Shown: positions 42,056 through 52,487 of the stretch, piece by piece
Layout: every line of letters begins with the position of its first letter
Position numbering within the stretch: position 1 is the stretch's first letter
NCBI GenBank assembly: GCA_048013815.1
Contig: CM106586.1
Coordinates: 24,242,001 to 24,306,000, forward strand
Origin: Setoptus koraiensis
Taxonomy: Eukaryota > Animalia > Arthropoda
DNA: 64,000 nucleotides
Direction: 5' to 3'
The notes under the pieces: model-generated
The model's database searches: none
What the model was told of the DNA's origin: nothing
The model's input: the letters and a program-made list of their open reading frames with translations, nothing else
Program-made: the position numbers and the translations under genes

Positions 42056-43456
42056 ATGTCCTCATTATTTCGCATGTTTTCCAAGGACAAAAACAAGTCT
42101 ATGATTACTATTGCAGATCCCATCGACACAATTTGTAGTGACTCTCAAGTATCAATAAACAATTCTTCCTCGGCTAAACAAAACCACGGCAAAAAGAATG
42201 GTTTCAAGAATAGTGGCAACAATAAACGAAAGTTGTCAATTGATGGCAAACAACAGTCTGCACCACTTACATCAGTTGAATTAGATCACGACTGCACCAT
42301 GGAGAAAAATAACAATCTATTAAATATGAAATCATTGTCATTAGATGAGAGCCAACAATCATCGCTGGATGCCGATATAGCATTACCGGAGGAACAATGT
42401 GACATTCCAACATTTTTGCATACACAAAATTGTGATAAGCATCTGATTGATGAAACTAGGAGGCATCTAGCTGAACGATACAAAAAATTAGAACCCGATT
42501 CACTATATGAACACGACTATAAACGAATGCTCAATGACGATTGGACAGTCACTAGATTTTTGCTTCGACGTCGTCAAGACCCAAAAAGAGCCGCCAAACT
42601 AATGGAAGAATGTGGCAGATTCAGGAAACAATACAAAATGTCTGAGGTAAAACTTTGGGAATTTCCAATTGAATTTCATAAAGCGGGTGGATTGTTTCAT
42701 TATGCACCAGATCGTGTTGGCAATGAGACATTATACATGAGAGTTAAAATGTATAGAAGAGTTCCGGAAATCAGCGACGTCTTCAAGGCCTTCATCTTGT
42801 GCTGCATTGAGGAATGTGATATGGCTAATGGTGGTCGTGGTACGGCTGTCATATTTGATTTAAGTCATTGTGGATTACAAAATGTCGATTTAGGTTTCTT
42901 GTCTTGGTTATTGTCATCATTTAGAAATTATTGCCCAAAAGGTGTCAGCTATATACTGGTTTACAATTTACCATGGATACTAAATGCCACTTGCAAGTTG
43001 GCAATGTCTTGGATGAGTGCCAGCAATCGGTAAGTCTATCCCTCATCCAACGCTGTGCACCATGTGAGTGTATAATGAGTGTTAGTTGTAATAACCAATC
43101 TAATTTAATCTAATTGTTTATGTTTGTACCTGTGAAAATAAAATGTTATTTTACTCAGTCGCTGTTTGAGATTTGTTCACGGTAGCGAGATTGAGAATTT
43201 TGTAGCCAAAGAAAATCTACCAGATTACCTGGGAGGAACTTGCGGAATCAATTACAAAGCTATACCAGAGGGCTCACTACCGGCAGAGGATGTTTGTGAT
43301 AAGATTGATATAACAAAGGAGCAAGCCATAAAAATAAGAGAATTGTTTAGTGAATATTTAGTTGATGATGATAAGCTAGTCGAATGTGACAACGAAGATT
43401 CTAATTCAACTATAATGACTAGAGCCTCAAAATATTTGGCCTCCGTGGTGCCCTGA
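42056..43456 (+). CDS. CRAL-TRIO lipid-binding protein, MOSPD2-like N-terminal half; 2 exons 42056-43029, 43159-43456; 423 aa
   Basis: LIDETRR...DDWTVTRFL...FDLSHCGLQNVDLGF...YNLPWILNA...ENLPDYLGGT follows the MOSPD2-type CRAL-TRIO pattern. A phase-2 GT-AG intron joins the two ORFs in frame. Confidence 0.85.
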
Positions 43457-45402
43457 TTATAACTCATTAGGACAGGTGCTTTCGATATCTTATATGTTGT
43501 ATATAATTAACAGTATATAATAATAATGATAATATTAGGTAAATTGAAGAACATATTCGTGCTGTCTACTACTACAGCGAACAGACAATAAAAATACCTT
43601 GTTATAGGGTTCGTTCTTGAGTTTTTATTGATTAGGTTTTTTGAATTTTAACCATGTGAGCCGATGATCGAATACTTGAATGCAAGATTGATGATCGCAA
43701 TACACAGAATATTCTTCTGACTAGAGTCAGAACTAAACTTATTCAATTGAAATTGACCTATGGTAGCTGCTTGACTTCACACAGTGGACAGTAAAGCAAG
43801 GCAAGGTGTTGTTTCCTCTTTTAATCTCTGTGATCGTTTGGTTTGCAATTCTAAAAAGGATTCTCAGTGCCTGAAATAGAAACTAAACTAGTCGTGCTAT
43901 TAGACCAGTTATGGAAAGTGGGGTAATAAATAACGAGAAGAAGAACTTGTAATTTATAAATTAGGGATAAATCAAATAAGAATGAGTCTGCAATTTACTT
44001 TGCAGTTGGAAATAATGATCAGCACGAGATAAGGGACATTTGATTTGAAACTCATCTATAAGCAATTTTAATGAACTAAATAACTTGATTGTATCAAATC
44101 ACAAGAACAAGAAGAGAGATGAGATTGAGGATATCTCTCTCTAATAAGCAATTAATCTAGCATGAACAGTAGCTCATGATACCGCCATTCTGCTAGTATT
44201 AACATCACAAGTACAAACAAAAGTTGCTATCGCAAAAAAAAAAGTTTTTCTGATTTGCATCACATAAGACTAAAGAAAGAAGGCAAGTTGCCCCGATAGG
44301 GCGAAGCATGAATTGTTGTATTATTGTTGTTTGTTGTCCATGGAAAAAACTGTCATACATCATTGTTGACATATTGTCAAGAGAGCTTTACAAACTTAGT
44401 GTATCGCCAGTGGTGAGTCATAACCATTTGTTAGTACCTGTTAACTTGATCATCCGGCAGCCATCGGATCTACTTGTGAACTTGAGCAAACAAACAAACA
44501 GTGTAATTCGATATCCGATCCGCGGTTCTCAAGGTAAAATATTTCAGCAACTTGCTACTAAAAAGAAACAAATATAGTATGAGATCCCAGAAATGGAAAT
44601 TTGCTCTTGATGTTGTTATTGTCGTTTATTTCCATGAATATGTGTGTCTTGGAAACACTTGATGTCTACAGTTGTTCATTAGTAGGTTATCTACCAACAA
44701 CAAAACAAGATTGCAACCAATTGATATTGGACATACTTCTTCTTACATCTTGCATCATGTCTAGATACTTGTGTCTTTCTAATTGACTGTATCTAGGCTA
44801 CTTACAACGGCTAAAGGTGTGGTTTACGGGCCGCCCTGTATTGTCATTATTAATCTATTACTATAAATTATTGCAAATAGTAAGACGGTATCATCTTTCA
44901 TCATTATGATATTATACAAAGAAGCTATGGAGATCATGATTATCATAGAAAAACATTGTCTTGTGTTAAACACATGAACAAACAAAAGTAGAGCACTAAA
45001 AATGTACGAAACGTGATAAAAGTTCGGGATGTTGGTTCATTAGTCATATTCATCATTCTAAGTTGATTGTGGTTACAACACACCAAAATAAAAGATTGAG
45101 TTCAGATTAGATATACTAAGTAACGAACATACAACTTCAAACAGTCTTATAAACAGAAGCATAGATTATTCTCAAATTATTCTGGTGATAATGAATGAAT
45201 GTGATGTCCAAGATATTACTCGATATTTTCAATTAAGAAATTCCTTTGAAGCAGTTAACAGAAAAAGCAAATTCGACAATAACCATTATAACTGTCAACG
45301 CTCGTCTCAACAACATTACGCATCGATTCAAACAAATTGAGATAAATTTTCGGCATAATCAGCTCAATTAGCACTGAAAGTCTATCGACCAACATTTTAA
45401 AA

Positions 45403-46875
45403 ATGGTCAATTCATCTAGCAAACTAAATGGACAAATGGTTGGTACTGTTTCTGCGATTGACCAATTTTCCAGGAACTATATCGAGACATCGACTGAGGC
45501 TCCAATATACAAGAAAGTAGATAATCAAATCAACAATGATTGTGTTACAAAAAAAGGTCGAGTCCATGCTTTTGATACCATCACCTATTGGGTGGGTAAC
45601 TCGAAACAAGCAGCATCCTTTTACATGAGTCATCTTGGATTTGAACCAATTGCCTTCAAGGGCCTGGAAACAGGGTCACGTGATGTGGCTTGTCACGTTT
45701 TAAAATTGAACGATATTGTTATACAATTTGTTTGTGCCGTCCAGCCAAACAACGAAGTCATAAGTGACTTTTTAAAGAAACATGGCGACGCTGTCAAAGA
45801 TGTGGCGTTTCAAGTTGAAAATATCGAGGACATGTTAGAGCACGCTCTCAGTCAAGGTGCCGAATTAGTTCATCCTTTAGAGATACTCCAATATGACGGG
45901 GATAATCAATTAGATCAAAGTGACGACAACTCGAAACAGTCAATACAATTGCAACAATTGAATGCAAATGGACAAGCAACACGAAAGTCACCTAATCGTT
46001 CTATATTGAAAAAGGCGACAATTAAAGCCTTCGGCGACGTTACTCATACCTTCATCGAAAGAAACTATGATTATGGTTATGCAAAGTTTCAACCTGGGTA
46101 CGAGGAGCCCTCGTTCAAGGTGAATTGTTGATAATATTCTACAAAATTAGTTTGGATTGATTCCGATTATCTAAGAATGACATTTTTCAACTGAAATCTT
46201 TTCTAACGTTTCTAAATACAGCTTCCGCCGGCTTTTGAAAAACTACCAAAAATTCAAGTTTTGGAAACAGATCATCTTGTAGGACAATTCATACCCAACA
46301 AACTGGAGGAAATGAATGAATGGTATAGCAAGGTATTGAAATTTAAACGATTCTGGTCGGTGGACGAAAAAACTATTCGTACTGAACACTCTGGTGTCAA
46401 GACCCATGTAATGACCAACGACAATGAGAAGATCAAGATACCTTTATGTGAAGTTATTCTATCGAAGAAAGCCAGATCAAAATCAGAGGAGTTCGTCAGA
46501 TTCAACTATGGCTCAGGTATACATCACATAGCTCTAAAGACAGATGACATTGTTTCGACAGTCGCTAATCTGCGAGAACGTGGTCTAGATTTTTTGCATA
46601 CTCCGGACATTTACTATGTACATCTAAAAGAGCGTTTGAAAGACTGTTCACTGAAAATCAAAGAGGATATTGATCAGTTGCACAAGTTGAAGATTCTCAT
46701 TGATTTTGATGAGCAAGGTTATTTGTTACAGATATTCACGAGGCCAGTCCAAGATAGGCCAACATTTATTTTTGAGTTCATACAACGATCTGAACACGAT
46801 GGTTTTGGAGCGGGAAACTTCCTAGCGTTGTTCAAGGCTATAGAAGCCGAGACGGCATTGAGGGGAAATCTGTGA
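45403..46875 (+). CDS. 4-hydroxyphenylpyruvate dioxygenase-like protein with altered active site; 2 exons 45403-46119, 46222-46875; 456 aa
   Basis: FDTITYWVGNSKQAASFY, HGDAVKDVAF, FGDVTHTFIER, RFWSVD, HIAL, GYLLQIFTRPVQDRPT and GFGAGNF...LRGNL are HPPD hallmarks. Phase-0 GT-AG intron of 102 nt. Confidence 0.93.
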
Positions 46876-46990
46876 ATCAATGATAATATTCGCCAATTGC
46901 AATAAAAGCTCGATTTTAGTCTAGCTCCAGAGAATTGTGTTAGATTAAACAATACACAAGATCTATTCACACAAATTTGTTACTTATTTT

Positions 46991-48088
46991 TTAACGGGAT
47001 TTTTTATCACTAATGGTATATTTATCATACGTTTTAGTGGGATCGTATGACTCCCAACGAGAAGCCGGAAAAATATGCTTGTTTCTCTCGTACCAACTTC
47101 TCAGGAGAACTTTACCAGCGTGGGATTCGTCTTTTTCTATGGATGCATCAGCTTTCAATCGAACATCCTCGTGGACATCAAACGAAAATAGTGGACCACT
47201 TTTACCCCTAGCTTTGGTAACTATAAAATCATAGAATGTATAATGATGTGGTATTATAAGATCCTCTTTAACATACATCAATTGGTCTGCTGTTATAGAT
47301 CGCAATTCATTGAATTCTTTGCGCAGAACTTCCATGCAGCGCTGAAGAAACTGATAGATTGAGTGGCCTTTTTTCATTTTAACCGTTCTCCTATGACCAG
47401 AGCCATCCCAGTAACTGAATGTGATTTCTATTTCCTCCTCTTTCAATTTCTCCTGTCTTTCCTGCCATTTAAGACGCAACTCTTCTCGCAGTCTCATTTC
47501 TGCTTCTTCTCTTTCGCGATCAGGTAAAAAACTTGTATCTACATCCGGATTTTTAAGCATTTTTCTCCTCTTTTTGGGTTCAAATCTTGCTTCGGAAGCA
47601 GAATTGGAGTCGCTATCAGCTGAAGATACGCCAGGTATCTTGGCAGTTTGCTGTTGTTTCTCCTCTTGTTCGACCTCTTCTTTGCTACCATTATCATCTT
47701 TATCCTCGTCCTCTTCATCATCTTCATCAAATTTGAATGACAACACTTGTGTTTGCTTGCGCTTTTTTTCTAATAATTCTTTTTTGATCTCTGTTTGTTT
47801 GATTCGTTTTTCGGCATTCTGCTGGGCAAGCTGCTTCTCTCTTTCCCTCACTGCCATTTCATGTTTTTCTTTCATTTGATCTAATGTGACCAAACCAACA
47901 GTTTGAGACTTAATATGAGCCTCAATTGCATCGTAATGTGTAGCAAACTTATTTCCCAAGGTGCTAATCTTGAGGTCTTCTTCTATTTTCTTCTTTTTCA
48001 GCTCCATTTCCTCTCTGGCCAGTTCACGTTTCTTTTGTAGTTGCATAGCTCTATTGGCCTCGTCGGCAGCTCCTTTATAGTGGGCCAT
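46991..48088 (-). CDS. FAM50: FAM50/XAP5 nuclear protein; intronless CDS, 365 aa
   Basis: [54 protein letters not shown] and [20 protein letters not shown] are XAP5-family motifs. Confidence 0.96.
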
Positions 48089-49277
48089 CCTGAAATAGTA
48101 AAAATTCGGTTGGTTGTCAAATATTAAGTGTACTCAGTAATTAGTACAGAATTCGATTAATAATGTTAGAATTGTGAGCAGTATATTTTAGCATCTATTT
48201 TGTCCGGCAATAACAACTGCGATATAATGGCCGCCAATCATCGAGATGGATGTAACATGGATTGGCCCGGCAATAAATCACTCAAATTCCATGATTTGCT
48301 CGTTTGTTTATTTGATGATGCTAAGAAATAACGCATGAGGATAAAATTTATTCCATCGACGGTTCACAACGAAACTACAGCTGTGAAGAACTCACTTCAA
48401 CGACAACTCACTTTAGCGACTGCGTACCCTGCCTGGACGCTCTCTGACTCGATCCACCCGAGCCCGGCCCACATGACTCTCTTAGCTCTCGGGATAGAGG
48501 TTGTTTATTGGTCGCCGTAGGCGTGGATGGCACGCTTTGGGCAAATGGTCAAAATTCGCATCTCAATCTAAATCAAGTCAGTGTCGTCGGTGTCGTTGAA
48601 ATTATCGTTCTTTGGAATGAGGCTGTAGGGTTGAAATGAATCTTCGTTGAACTTGAGCGTCGTTGGAGTGTCTGCAACCCGAATAGAATCGATCGAATAG
48701 ACAGCCGATCTTTATAATTCGTACCACAGGATCCCATACAACTTCATATTTTGGGCGAAAATCAGAGCGCAGATCTCACAAGATGCAATTTTGTTCGACA
48801 CAGGGGTTTGAAAGACTAAATCGAAGCGTCCACATTGCCGATCAAATATTTGTTCCACGTTCTATTAGTACCGTCCTTCTCATTTACTTTTCAAATCTCC
48901 ACCACTATTACGAGGCATCCTAGAACAATAGCAAAAATCAAGTGGAGTCCGCGCTCGAGACACCAGCTATCGAATTGAAGTCCCATATCACCCACTAGGG
49001 ACCAGATTCGCCATAGAGTTATTGTAACCACAAAGAGTTTCTAGATTTATTGGCAACTCAAACAGAGAGAACAAGCATACTCATCAATGAACTGTTGAGG
49101 TAAAACCGTGTAGAAACAAGGGCATGTCCTCCCACATATAACTCACGACCGCTAGTAACAATGCGTTCATGATTTTCAACCTCATTTGTTTGTCGTGATT
49201 GAAATAGAATGACACCAGAGGCTTATTGAGTTCAGTTTGATTGAACTAATGTAAACTACTTGATATGTATGATAAAT

Positions 49278-50267
49278 TCATTGAAACGAATGTTCAGAAG
49301 CCGGAAAGGTTCCTTCTTGAACCTCCCTATAAAACTCTTTCGAGGCATTCAGTAGTTGATCACCAAGGTTACAGTAACGTTTCACAAATTTTGGCTTGAA
49401 GACCTTCAATTTGTTACTTGAGTTTGCTGATGGCGGTATAAAGCCGGCCATATCTTGCCAGACCAAAATTTGGGCATCACAGTGGGGCCCGGCTCCAATG
49501 CCCACAGTGGGTATCTCCAGTTTTTCGGTAATCATCCTTGCTAAATCACTCGGAACCATTTCTAGGACACATGCAAAGGCACCTGCGTCTTGTAATCTCA
49601 GGGCGTCTTCGATTAAGTTGTTGGCACTCACAGAATCACGACCTTGTACTTTGAAACCACTCAACAAGTTTTCGTGTTGGGGTGTGAAACCTATGTGGGC
49701 CATCACTGGTATCCCTGAACAAGTCAACAATTTCACATGGTCATAATATTGTGAACCTCCCTCTAGTTTTACAGCCTCGGCACCTGCCTCCTTCATTAGG
49801 CGAACAGCACTTTTTAAAGCCTGTTTGGGACTACATTGATAAGTACCGAACGGTAAATCCGCTACTAACAGGGCTCGCTCCACTCCTCTGGACACTGATT
49901 TTGTGAACAAGATCATATCATCCAAAGTTATCGGGATAGTAGAAGAGCATCCCATATGAACATTGGCTGCAGAGTCGCCAACCAATAAACAAGGTAGTTT
50001 GGCTGTGTCAAATATGCGAGCCGTCATCACATCATAAGTGGTCAACATGGCCCAACGCTCTTTCCGTATCTTCAACATCTTTAAATCAGATATACGGATT
50101 TTGATTTTGTTGTGCAAACTACCTGTTGTACAAGCTACTGAAACTTCATGACATCCCGGATTAGATTGATCAGACGATTGACCCAGTACAGGATACGGGT
50201 GGGTCTCTTCACTAAGTTGGGGTATTTGATTCGGGTCTGTTTTGTCAGGAATGTTAGTGGTTGACAT
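49278..50267 (-). CDS. panB: 3-methyl-2-oxobutanoate hydroxymethyltransferase (ketopantoate hydroxymethyltransferase), bacterial type, intronless; likely start ATG 50267 (ORF open to 50321)
   Basis: WAMLTTYD, LLVGDSAANV, ADLPFGTY, AVKLEGG, PVMAHIGFTPQ, GFKVQGR, LEMVP, IPTVGIGAGPHCDAQILVWQDMAG and PKFVKRY...FPASEHSF cover all PanB motifs, including the Mg-binding Asp residues and the catalytic Glu. Confidence 0.97.
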   Translation of the reverse strand: MSTTNIPDKTDPNQIPQLSEETHPYPVLGQSSDQSNPGCHEVSVACTTGSLHNKIKIRISDLKMLKIRKERWAMLTTYDVMTARIFDTAKLPCLLVGDSAANVHMGCSSTIPITLDDMILFTKSVSRGVERALLVADLPFGTYQCSPKQALKSAVRLMKEAGAEAVKLEGGSQYYDHVKLLTCSGIPVMAHIGFTPQHENLLSGFKVQGRDSVSANNLIEDALRLQDAGAFACVLEMVPSDLARMITEKLEIPTVGIGAGPHCDAQILVWQDMAGFIPPSANSSNKLKVFKPKFVKRYCNLGDQLLNASKEFYREVQEGTFPASEHSFQ

Positions 50268-50407
50268 GATTCTCCGAGAAAATGAATGAGAAATTAAATA
50301 ATATTCTTTTGATTCATACAAGAATTGAAAATAATGTTAAAAAGGTTAACGTGTAGTCTAAATGATGTTGAGTTGAGATAATCACAATGGGAAATTGTAA
50401 AAATTTT

Positions 50408-50480
50408 TGGAGACGCCGAGAATCGAACTCGGGACCTCATGCATGCTAAGCATGCGCTCTACCAACTGAGCCACGTCCCC
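50408..50480 (-). tRNA. tRNA-Ala (anticodon AGC), 73 nt
   Basis: Reverse complement GGGGACG TGGCTCAGTTGGTAGAGCG CATGC TTAGCAT GCATG AGGTC CCGAG TTCGATT CTCGG CGTCTCC A forms a complete cloverleaf with A/B boxes. A TTTTT Pol III terminator follows at 50403-50399. Confidence 0.97.
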
Positions 50481-51591
50481 TTTGATGTAGAAATACGAAG
50501 GCCGAACTCAACTGATACTTGTTCAAACTAGCTATAAGTGTACTTTCTCTCATTAACTTCTCGGCCTATTTAAAATTAAGACTAGATCAAGTTTCAGTCT
50601 ATATTATTAACAACTATGGGAACAAATGCTTGAACGGTGCGAGTTAAGATATGAGCCGGAATCCAGTTGAGTTTTCGGTCTGCTAAGCTTGTCTCATATC
50701 GGATTGCTTGAGTCTGTTTGGAACGGGTCTTGGTGGTCAGTTACGATTTTTTGATCTACTTTTCTATGCTGCGTTGGATACATTTAGCGTGGATTATTAT
50801 GAAGATTACTCGTTGAAGGAAAAGGGGTATCCATCCGACGATACGATGAGTGTAACAAAAGTATACCGAAGGTGTCTAGTCTTAAAGTTTTCGACTTGCA
50901 GGTATCCACTAATACAGATGAGAGTGACCAAGCTTATCGAATATTCCAAAGCAATGGATCTTCAAGAGAATGAAGCTAAATATGGAAACTAAGTTAAAAG
51001 GTTAAGAGTGTACTCTCGAGAGTTCAGTGTGTGTTAAATTAAATTAGAAGTTACCATTAAAAAATAATGGTAACTTCGTAGAAACTTCGAACTTGATCGT
51101 TCAAGAGATCTCATTACGCATGACTACATGCTTGTTAGTAAAGCTCGTTGGTACCAAGATTGGTAAACTAACTGATGTGACAAAAAGCAATGGACTCAAT
51201 TGCAATTGAATTAGCATGGGGCCCGCCTAGTTGGCTGCAGAAATCATGTTGAATGTCGCAACAGAAACGGGTTGATAGGGTCAGTGTCACTGCGCCAAAG
51301 TGTCAATATATAAAAACGATGAAATACGAGCACGAAACGATAAGATGTGTGTACTAATAGCTGAAGATGACTGTGCACAAGGAGTCTCTAATGGAGACGC
51401 GAGAATAAGAAAAGATGGGGATAGAGAGATAGTATATAGATAGTCCATGCAGGGCAAGAGGGTGTTCTCAGCTGTTGTTCGGTGCCGACGGCAATGTTAA
51501 TCTGGCATTAGTTTGGTACGAGAAAGAAAAGAACAGAGCGCTACTGCTGCTATGTATTCGAATTTCGACGTTCGAAATAGCACTGCAGGCT

Positions 51592-51592
<1 letters not shown>

Positions 51593-51631
<39 letters not shown>

Positions 51632-51772
51632 TCTCTCTTTTCGCTGGTTCATTTGTTCTGCAGGGACGCATTGTGCTCGTTTCATGATGAAACGAGCCTG
51701 ATGATGCGTGCCCTTGTGCGTCTGAGATTTGTGCGACCAGAAACAACAACAACAACGACAGAAATGGACATG

Positions 51773-51809
<37 letters not shown>
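51593..51809. repeat. (CT)n tract 51593-51638 and (AG)n tract 51778-51809 upstream of the SH3 gene
   Basis: Direct reading. The two tracts are mutually complementary and GAGA-type. Confidence 0.9.
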
Positions 51810-51810
<1 letters not shown>

Positions 51811-52487
51811 AGGCACAGTCCGTGCGCAAAGAAATTAGAGAACCACAGTGATGAGGGGCGTTCTATGGCTCTGACTGCTAGCATTTCATCGTCATCAACT
51901 TCATGAGAAGCATCATTTTCGTCATCGTTGTCGTGCCACATTGTTGTGATAGTTTAAGCGCACAGTATTAGCGTGTGCGTGTCTGTGCGTTTGTGGGTAT
52001 TGGTTGAGCCAGCAACAGTAAAACCAATACCAATACCAGCACTAGTGTGTGTATGCGATAGATAATGATCACTGTGGATATTCTCAAGTCAATCTATTAT
52101 TGTCTATTTACCACAATGTTAGTATACTACTGGTGCTAATTATATTAGTATCACTGCTAATACTCACATATTAATAAGTATATTGGACTGACCTGTTGAA
52201 TCCGACATTGGGAACAAGCCGATTTCAATCGATTCCTGTTGTTTTTTATTTAATATTTTAGCATTATTATTTATATTTAAAATTCAAACGCTGGTGCACT
52301 TGTTGATATGATATCCATATATATCTTACTGGCATGACAAGCCCTATCAACAGCCAGTTACATTTGATGCAATCGAACATCAAGGAACCAGCAGTCAGCA
52401 AACTATAAATAAATTATATCGGATGTTGTTTCACACCGTGTGTATCAAAGACCAATTTATCGAAACAAATATTGTCACACAAGGATA

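Follow-up and report, generated by a model that had tools for sequence, protein, structure and literature searches.

The question raised by this locus is how a sap-feeding mite comes to carry a gene for the synthesis of vitamin B5, animals being normally unable to make pantothenate. The locus lies in a 64,000-nucleotide stretch of the genome of Setoptus koraiensis (assembly GCA_048013815.1, contig CM106586.1, positions 24,242,001 to 24,306,000 of the forward strand), referred to below as the window, and encodes PanB, the ketopantoate hydroxymethyltransferase. The explanation which we consider very probable is that of a working, horizontally acquired actinobacterial panB, vertically inherited since the eriophyoid ancestor. 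Transfer of panB into an eriophyoid is already published, intact bacterial panB and panC having been described in Aculops lycopersici (Greenhalgh et al. 2020 eLife; PMC7738191), and the S. koraiensis case extends this known phenomenon.

The gene and the stretch directly upstream are delimited as follows.

49278 to 50267, minus strand: panB coding sequence, ATG to stop, single exon, 329 amino acids, ketopantoate hydroxymethyltransferase.

50268 to 50321, minus strand: in-frame upstream stretch to a TTG; a mechanical open reading frame (ORF) call only, probably 5' untranslated region.

An earlier note on this DNA had announced an intact, intronless PanB ORF at 49278-50321. Such an ORF is indeed present, and PF02548, TIGR00222 and PDB matches agree on its identity. 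The start, by contrast, had to be moved. In the ORF list, the frame runs on the minus strand from the TTG at 50321 and encodes 347 amino acids because bacterial start codons count there as starts; ATG first occurs at 50267, and the sister-species orthologue (P0001) begins at the equivalent methionine. The PF02548 match to the product reaches 339 bits (cut-off 28.7, E=2.2e-101) and covers profile positions 1-258 of 259, while the NCBIfam panB equivalog TIGR00222 and NF001452 gave 293 bits (cut-off 207.55) and 350 bits (cut-off 272), respectively. Among PDB entries, the best match was PanB from M. tuberculosis (1oy0; 301 bits, E=1e-88), the enzymes from Burkholderia, Neisseria and E. coli scoring 190-208 bits and E. 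coli 1m3u 190, which bears out the impression of a protein closer to Mycobacterium than to E. coli. No second panB copy was found in the 48.76-Mb genome.

Where the gene came from was addressed by database searches and phylogeny. The word-based search returned hits in three tiers: one orthologue at 82% identity; about 15 proteins of 300-352 amino acids, at 50-56% identity, which came only from unannotated assemblies; and Actinomycetota at 53-58% (Modestobacter, Geodermatophilus, Nocardia, Pseudonocardia and others). All named hits among the best 120 were from Actinomycetota. These 120 contained no PanB from fungi, plants or other animals, the database including fungal and plant proteomes, and neither the annotated arthropod proteomes which yield FAM50 nor those of Tetranychus and Bemisia, both in the database, contributed a PanB to them. 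The second-tier contigs that were fetched carry eukaryotic neighbours (RPB3, NTF2, PX, Mon2, HEM4, Utp12, Xaa-Pro peptidase, Vps23). When genomes were sampled directly, the best match in 301 Actinomycetota genomes showed 59% identity (316 bits), and the best in 40 evenly drawn Pseudomonadota genomes 47% (238 bits), a Stenotrophomonas-labelled record excepted.

A maximum-likelihood (ML) tree was then inferred with IQ-TREE (LG+C20) from 80 rows, 17 of them from a eukaryotic context and 63 bacterial, over 264 columns. All 17 eukaryote-context PanBs fall into a single clade (100/97), with no bacterium among them. This mite clade lies inside a clade of 60 rows (100/98), all Actinomycetota bar one Stenotrophomonas-titled record, and its sister (96/86) is a mixed assemblage including Kineosporiaceae, Nocardioidaceae (Aeromicrobium), Saccharomonospora-type and Modestobacter/Geodermatophilus-like hits. 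A donor in the Actinomycetota, class Actinomycetes, is supported by this placement, with no narrowing to a family.

Two records deserve separate mention. In the tree, the panB of Stenotrophomonas sp. MMGLT7 (L014/L055) nests within Aeromicrobium with strong support, and its 291 bits far exceed the second-highest score among the 40 Pseudomonadota; this may be explained by a mislabelled or mixed record or by a transfer of the gene between bacteria. A contig labelled as an Actinomycetota metagenome-assembled genome (L009) was considered as a mis-binned mite contig and rejected, as it belongs to a high-GC bacterium with a PanB of 281 amino acids, its match to query residues 7-329 being a tblastn read-through.

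The number of transfers was approached through a structural character and through host genes. The character is the following.

49407 to 49436, minus strand: lineage-specific loop insert of 10 amino acids that covers about residues 278-287 and separates the C-terminal helix from the last barrel strand.

This insert of about 10 residues, noticed earlier, was confirmed by alignment, and its columns were left out of the PanB tree by a 60% fill rule. The site, at the boundary between 'DMAGF' and 'KFVKRY', is occupied in 17/17 eukaryote-context PanBs, the insert being 10 amino acids long in the window protein and P0001 and 28-55 in the 15 others. In the 63 aligned bacterial PanBs, 13 of which were viewed across the stretch, this site is without an insert. 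The first split inside the mite clade separates the window protein and P0001 from the other 15 (100/95). The same split is recovered in a tree of the host gene RPB3 with a support of 100 in the Shimodaira-Hasegawa-like approximate likelihood ratio test (SH-aLRT): the window genome and the P0001 run pair as sister to 36 sequences, and the whole clade, itself supported at 100, stands next to trombidiform mites. The tree of FAM50, the neighbour of panB in the window, also has the same first split as the PanB clade, the window protein falling inside Acariformes as sister to a clade containing the eriophyid Aceria tosichella. On the PanB side of these comparisons, RPB3 adjoins PanB P0007 on one contig, RPB3 P0284 and PanB P0005 come from one run, 3 of the 15 sister PanBs could be traced to eriophyoid-like mites, and eukaryotic neighbours were found on every contig checked.

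Because the 17 proteins are monophyletic (100/97), have a common insertion site and agree with the host-gene trees, one old transfer behind all 17 sampled lineages, followed by vertical descent, is favoured on present sequence evidence. It probably took place in the eriophyoid ancestor, before the deepest sampled split. The open questions singled out by the earlier note, the donor lineage and the number of independent transfers, are thereby narrowed: the donor can be placed in the Actinomycetes and no further down to a family, and a single event is favoured within the mite lineage. Gene order differs by branch, the window and the sister-species contig L001 having tRNA-panB-FAM50-HPD, and L002 and the P0006 contig NTF2-(331 aa)-panB, and the neighbourhood has therefore been rearranged since the transfer. 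On L002:6129-9008 and the P0006 contig, panB comes after NTF2 and a protein of 331/332 amino acids with no Pfam hit. As for the inserts themselves, the long ones of the 15 sister PanBs are of low complexity and have in common two short motifs, a 'YL' close to their beginning and a terminal 'LEL.R.P'. Neither occurs in the 10-residue insert of the window protein, and either the short or the long form could be ancestral.

The setting of panB in the mite chromosome is given by its neighbours.

50408 to 50480, minus strand: tRNA-Ala(AGC), predicted by ARAGORN, 141-213 nt upstream of the panB ATG, same strand.

46991 to 48088, minus strand: FAM50/XAP5, single exon, 365 amino acids, PF04921 E=2.6e-57, the downstream host neighbour.

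45403 to 46875, plus strand: HPD-like (glyoxalase-fold) gene of two exons, ORFs 45403-46131 and 46261-46875, intron-containing.

The animal neighbours claimed from the sequence (FAM50, a spliced HPD and a tRNA-Ala AGC) are thus all recovered, by PF04921, as two HPD-like ORFs and by ARAGORN, respectively, so that eukaryotic genes flank panB on both sides within 1.2 kb. An alanine tRNA with A34 is a eukaryotic, not a bacterial, feature. FAM50 finds its best named matches exclusively in arthropods, mites and spiders ranking first (62-68% identity), and further ORFs of the window are also of animal type (AP-mu, C11orf54-like DUF1907, ankyrin-SH3, protein kinase, HD-domain, MIF4G-MA3). The AT-rich, host-like codon usage proposed for panB holds as well: with a GC content of 0.44 and a third-position GC content (GC3) of 0.41, it falls in the range of 12 neighbouring ORFs (GC3 0.31-0.43), as against 0.89-0.97 in actinobacterial panB (n=4).

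The continuity of the locus was examined in independent contigs. The S. koraiensis assembly comprises two chromosomes with an N50 of 24.53 Mb (PMC11920263). A chimeric join had been named as a possible objection, and it met with two results. A contig of 6,204 bp from another study, at a depth of 113, covers 46000-50400, that is HPD-FAM50-panB, with one difference. In the sister species, the 7.6-kb contig L001 is collinear with window positions 42158-50434 at about 79% nucleotide identity and has the same order, from the end of the tRNA (L001:1-50, the 3' part being conserved at 90% over 50 nt) through panB and FAM50 to the two-exon HPD-like gene, the same two glyoxalase-domain ORFs following XAP5. 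Between the sister species and the window, PanB is 82% identical, FAM50 92% and RPB3 (from the same run as L001) 98%. Moreover, runs filed under a third organism label contain panB pieces with two differences. Runs X3 and X4 present identical contig sets, records and depths under different codes and count as one data set; their reads leave a gap over panB despite 99% of its words being indexed, the records having been filtered, which makes this gap uninformative.

Whether the gene still encodes a functional enzyme can be judged from its conservation. Compared with the L001 orthologue, panB shows a synonymous divergence (dS) of 0.76 and a nonsynonymous to synonymous ratio (dN/dS) of 0.147, which divides into 0.11 for the catalytic core and 0.33 for the N-terminal 55 residues; mite panB is under purifying selection. 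All of the 42 near-invariant columns, defined as at least 97% conserved in the 63 bacterial PanBs, are kept in the mite protein, and the same 42 are kept across the 17 eukaryote-context PanBs with two single exceptions. The PanB motifs GDS, ADLPFG, VKLEGG, H..GxTPQ and LE.VP are present, and the kept residues include the D of GDS, the D of ADLPFG, the K and E of VKLEGG, H191 and E236, whose individual roles we take to be those seen in the E. coli and M. tuberculosis structures. An AlphaFold2 model (mean predicted local distance difference test (pLDDT) score 80, predicted template modelling score 0.77) shows a triosephosphate isomerase-type (TIM) beta/alpha barrel of eight strands and eight strand-helix units with a C-terminal helix at 301-317. 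Its pLDDT exceeds 90 across most of residues 50-280, and low confidence is confined to residues 1-43, the loop 198-205 and residues 285-293, the last of which (pLDDT <50) fall in the region of the insert. The mite PanB would be expected to form ketopantoate, and the gene is presumably expressed in the mite.

A second gene of the pathway was identified in the same genome.

C2:7927140-7928048 and L023:8099-9127, minus strand: panC, single exon, 342 amino acids, no stops, PF02569 E=3e-84.

It is present as one copy on the same chromosome as panB, about 16 Mb away, and its neighbours are eukaryotic, with a Sac-domain phosphatase on one side, a ThiS-like ORF on the other and a sulfate permease also nearby. 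Its PDB matches (proteobacterial PanC at 183-186 bits vs 157 for M. tuberculosis PanC) hint at a donor different from that of panB, and panC probably stems from a separate, second transfer. Several genes for pyridoxal phosphate (PLP)-dependent decarboxylases were also found in the genome. Such decarboxylases of arthropods, or the breakdown of pyrimidines, could supply beta-alanine.

Other readings of these data have to be weighed. Bacterial contamination or a chimeric assembly join is next to inconceivable. It would draw on the pooling of about 100,000 wild mites for the assembly (PMC11920263) and on the possibility that the best spanning contig shares the assembly's source material, and it founders on a GC3 of 0.41 where the donor group has about 0.9 or more, on eukaryotic genes within 1.2 kb on both sides, on the gene order repeated, at 79% identity, in another species' 7.6-kb contig and on the panB pieces under a third organism label. 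Because composition, second-species synteny and separate contigs concur, a contaminant or chimera is effectively excluded, and panB is integrated among arthropod genes. Most improbable, too, is a vertically inherited eukaryotic PanB, as in fungi and plants, lost in other animals. Fungi and plants do have PanB and the tree holds no sequence from either; against this, the named hits among the best 120 are all Actinomycetota and none is fungal or plant, arthropod proteomes with FAM50 give no PanB among them, the mite clade is nested inside Actinomycetota (100/98, 96/86) and not merely beside them, and in a published tree the A. lycopersici PanB stands among bacteria (PMC7738191). A series of independent transfers, in which eriophyoid lineages would each have taken panB from related actinobacteria, is quite unlikely: the difference in synteny between the two main branches would suit it, as would the literature arguing for repeated panB transfers across arthropods (PMC7738191), yet the 17 PanBs are monophyletic (100/97) without a bacterium inside, all of them and no bacterium carry the insertion at the same site, and their branching order agrees with FAM50 and RPB3. 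It is also unlikely that panB was retained without a role in pantothenate synthesis, either as a decaying relic or as an enzyme recruited to another 2-oxoacid reaction. The missing partners described in the next paragraph speak for this possibility, and the dN/dS of 0.11 in the catalytic core, the near-invariant residues kept across 17 lineages and the intact panC co-retained in the same genome speak against it. Moreover, organisms without panE often use other reductases.

Several points weigh against our preferred explanation of an actinobacterial panB, inherited since the eriophyoid ancestor and serving pantothenate synthesis. The genome search suggested earlier for panC, panE and panD succeeded for panC and failed for the two others: in a six-frame, exon-by-exon search of the genome, PanE/ApbA (PF02558, PF08546) and PanD (PF02261) gave no match, and IlvC (PF07991) only a partial Rossmann match of 24.8 bits, a highly divergent or unrelated reductase being able to escape a search of this kind. 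As no panE, panD or IlvC was found, the recognised pathway is incomplete, without a ketopantoate reductase, and the physiological role of panB is a presumed one. No RNA run searched contained the panB stretch, and the S. koraiensis genome paper reports no transcriptome (PMC11920263). The proposed ML phylogeny could be realised with bacterial and eukaryote-context rows, the latter nesting in Actinomycetota, and its rows include neither fungal nor plant sequences, and none from Tetranychus or labelled A. lycopersici; what excludes a vertical eukaryotic origin is the hit ranking together with the published tree. For the 6,204-bp contig of run X2 that bridges the locus, the starting material may have been that of the assembly itself. 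In the FAM50 tree, the link to Aceria has an SH-aLRT of 92 and joins long branches. Finally, the A. lycopersici PanB likely belongs inside the clade of 15; we infer its orthology with the window protein because the 15 eukaryote-context PanBs, three of them eriophyoid-like, group with it.

With a single actinobacterial acquisition retained as the preferred explanation, its relation to known systems can be specified. That the phenomenon had precedents in spider mites, the tomato russet mite and whitefly, as stated in the earlier note, is published (PMC7738191), the same work citing panB/panC transfers for Tetranychidae, whitefly and nematodes. In A. lycopersici, panB and panC were tied to host genes by polymerase chain reaction (PCR), a polyadenylated panB transcript was found, and an approximately unbiased (AU) test rejected a common origin with the panB of spider mites (PMC7738191). 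The A. lycopersici gene (aculy01g38350) resembles that of S. koraiensis in being intact, of bacterial type and located beside host genes, with an unlinked panC of bacterial type, and both genes are unrelated to spider-mite panB, as was reported for the former and found here for the latter. S. koraiensis differs in representing another, early-branching eriophyoid lineage (probably Phytoptidae) and in its synteny. The panC of A. lycopersici adjoins Gtr1/RagA; in S. koraiensis, the scan of panC neighbours took in the Sac-domain phosphatase, the ThiS-like ORF and the sulfate permease, and a gene of that kind may lie among the remaining L024 ORFs. The text of that study (PMC7738191) names no actinobacterial donor, superfamily-wide single origin or loop insert, and the searchable literature likewise yielded no statement of any of these or of the gene in S. 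koraiensis.

Beyond eriophyoids, the tetranychid panB/panC genes and the panBC of Bemisia tabaci represent the same outcome, that is plant-feeding arthropods with bacterial pantothenate genes. The whitefly gene is a panB-panC fusion, whereas panB and panC are 16 Mb apart in S. koraiensis. With the Actinomycetota enzymes, including 1oy0, mite PanB shares family, fold and conserved residues, at 53-59% identity over a core of 274 amino acids, and it is set apart from them by a disordered N-terminus of 55 amino acids, the 10-residue insert, AT-rich codons and its location on a eukaryotic chromosome, outside any bacterial gene neighbourhood. Another parallel is the panC of Heterodera, where an animal also has an incomplete acquired B5 pathway completed by another organism or enzyme (PMC9582021). 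The cyst nematode is reported to depend on the plant for the panB step (PMC9582021); unlike it, the mite encodes panB and lacks only a recognisable reductase.

A scenario consistent with these observations can be proposed. An actinobacterial panB would have entered the nuclear genome of an eriophyoid ancestor, then lost its bacterial base composition, its product acquiring a disordered tail at the N-terminus and an insert in a surface loop, and would have been kept by vertical descent under purifying selection. The enzyme would use 5,10-methylene-tetrahydrofolate to hydroxymethylate alpha-ketoisovalerate, a compound that animals derive from valine, and so form ketopantoate. The step from ketopantoate to pantoate would have to be performed by an unrelated host reductase, by the plant or by a microbe, after which the separately acquired, unlinked panC would ligate pantoate and beta-alanine. 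Together, panB and panC would thus give a sap-feeding mite most of a de novo route to vitamin B5.

We regard as rather probable the broader proposition that panB entered the eriophyoid stem once, from an actinobacterium, and was kept in every sampled branch, bearing the loop insert of this lineage, with B5 autonomy ancestral to the superfamily and an unrecognised ketopantoate reductase at work. If true, vitamin B5 autonomy would be a superfamily-wide ancestral trait rather than peculiar to a single pest species, and eriophyoids would use a ketopantoate reductase of a not yet recognised kind. The missing reductase is a concrete gap. That the same gene, with its insert, occurs in 16 mite lineages besides an early-branching eriophyoid shifts a single-species observation towards such a trait and places the transfer earlier than the deepest split in the sample. 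Acquired panB and panC are among the clearest cases of gene transfer plausibly enabling arthropod life on nutrient-poor plant cell contents. Mite PanB is also without counterpart in vertebrates or beneficial insects.

The remaining features of the gene and its surroundings are the following.

50103 to 50267, minus strand: N-terminal extension, residues 1-55, polar and acidic, residues 1-43 predicted disordered.

49046 to 49051, minus strand: candidate polyadenylation signal AATAAA, 227 nt past the panB stop; pattern match only.

48241 to 49160, strand not assigned: panB-FAM50 intergenic region, about 740 bp longer than that of the sister species, holding a low-copy repeat fragment.

The extension had been put at about 35 amino acids, and counted from the ATG the protein is indeed some 36 residues longer N-terminally than M. 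tuberculosis PanB, 55 residues preceding the conserved core. Residues 1-43 have a pLDDT <50 in the AlphaFold2 model. The N-terminal stretch has 6 D+E vs 2 K+R, and given this acidic, polar make-up it appears unlike a mitochondrial presequence. A cytosolic location of mite PanB seems likely.

Upstream, the position of the tRNA-Ala, 141 nt from the ATG on the same strand, places an RNA polymerase III (Pol III) gene within the presumed panB promoter region, an arrangement conserved in the sister species. A scan for bacterial promoter and terminator matches around panB gave no excess over shuffled sequence, the scan itself being uninformative. Downstream, the alignment gap in the panB-FAM50 spacer amounts to 919 bp in the window vs 180 bp in L001. 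Part of this spacer (about 48808-49131) is a low-copy repeat insertion, as shown by two partial copies (70-71% identity) close to C2:16.77 Mb. Further along the window, a (GA)n/(CT)n microsatellite at 51468-51941 accounts for several spurious ORFs that overlap one another and abound in SLSLSL and RERERE.

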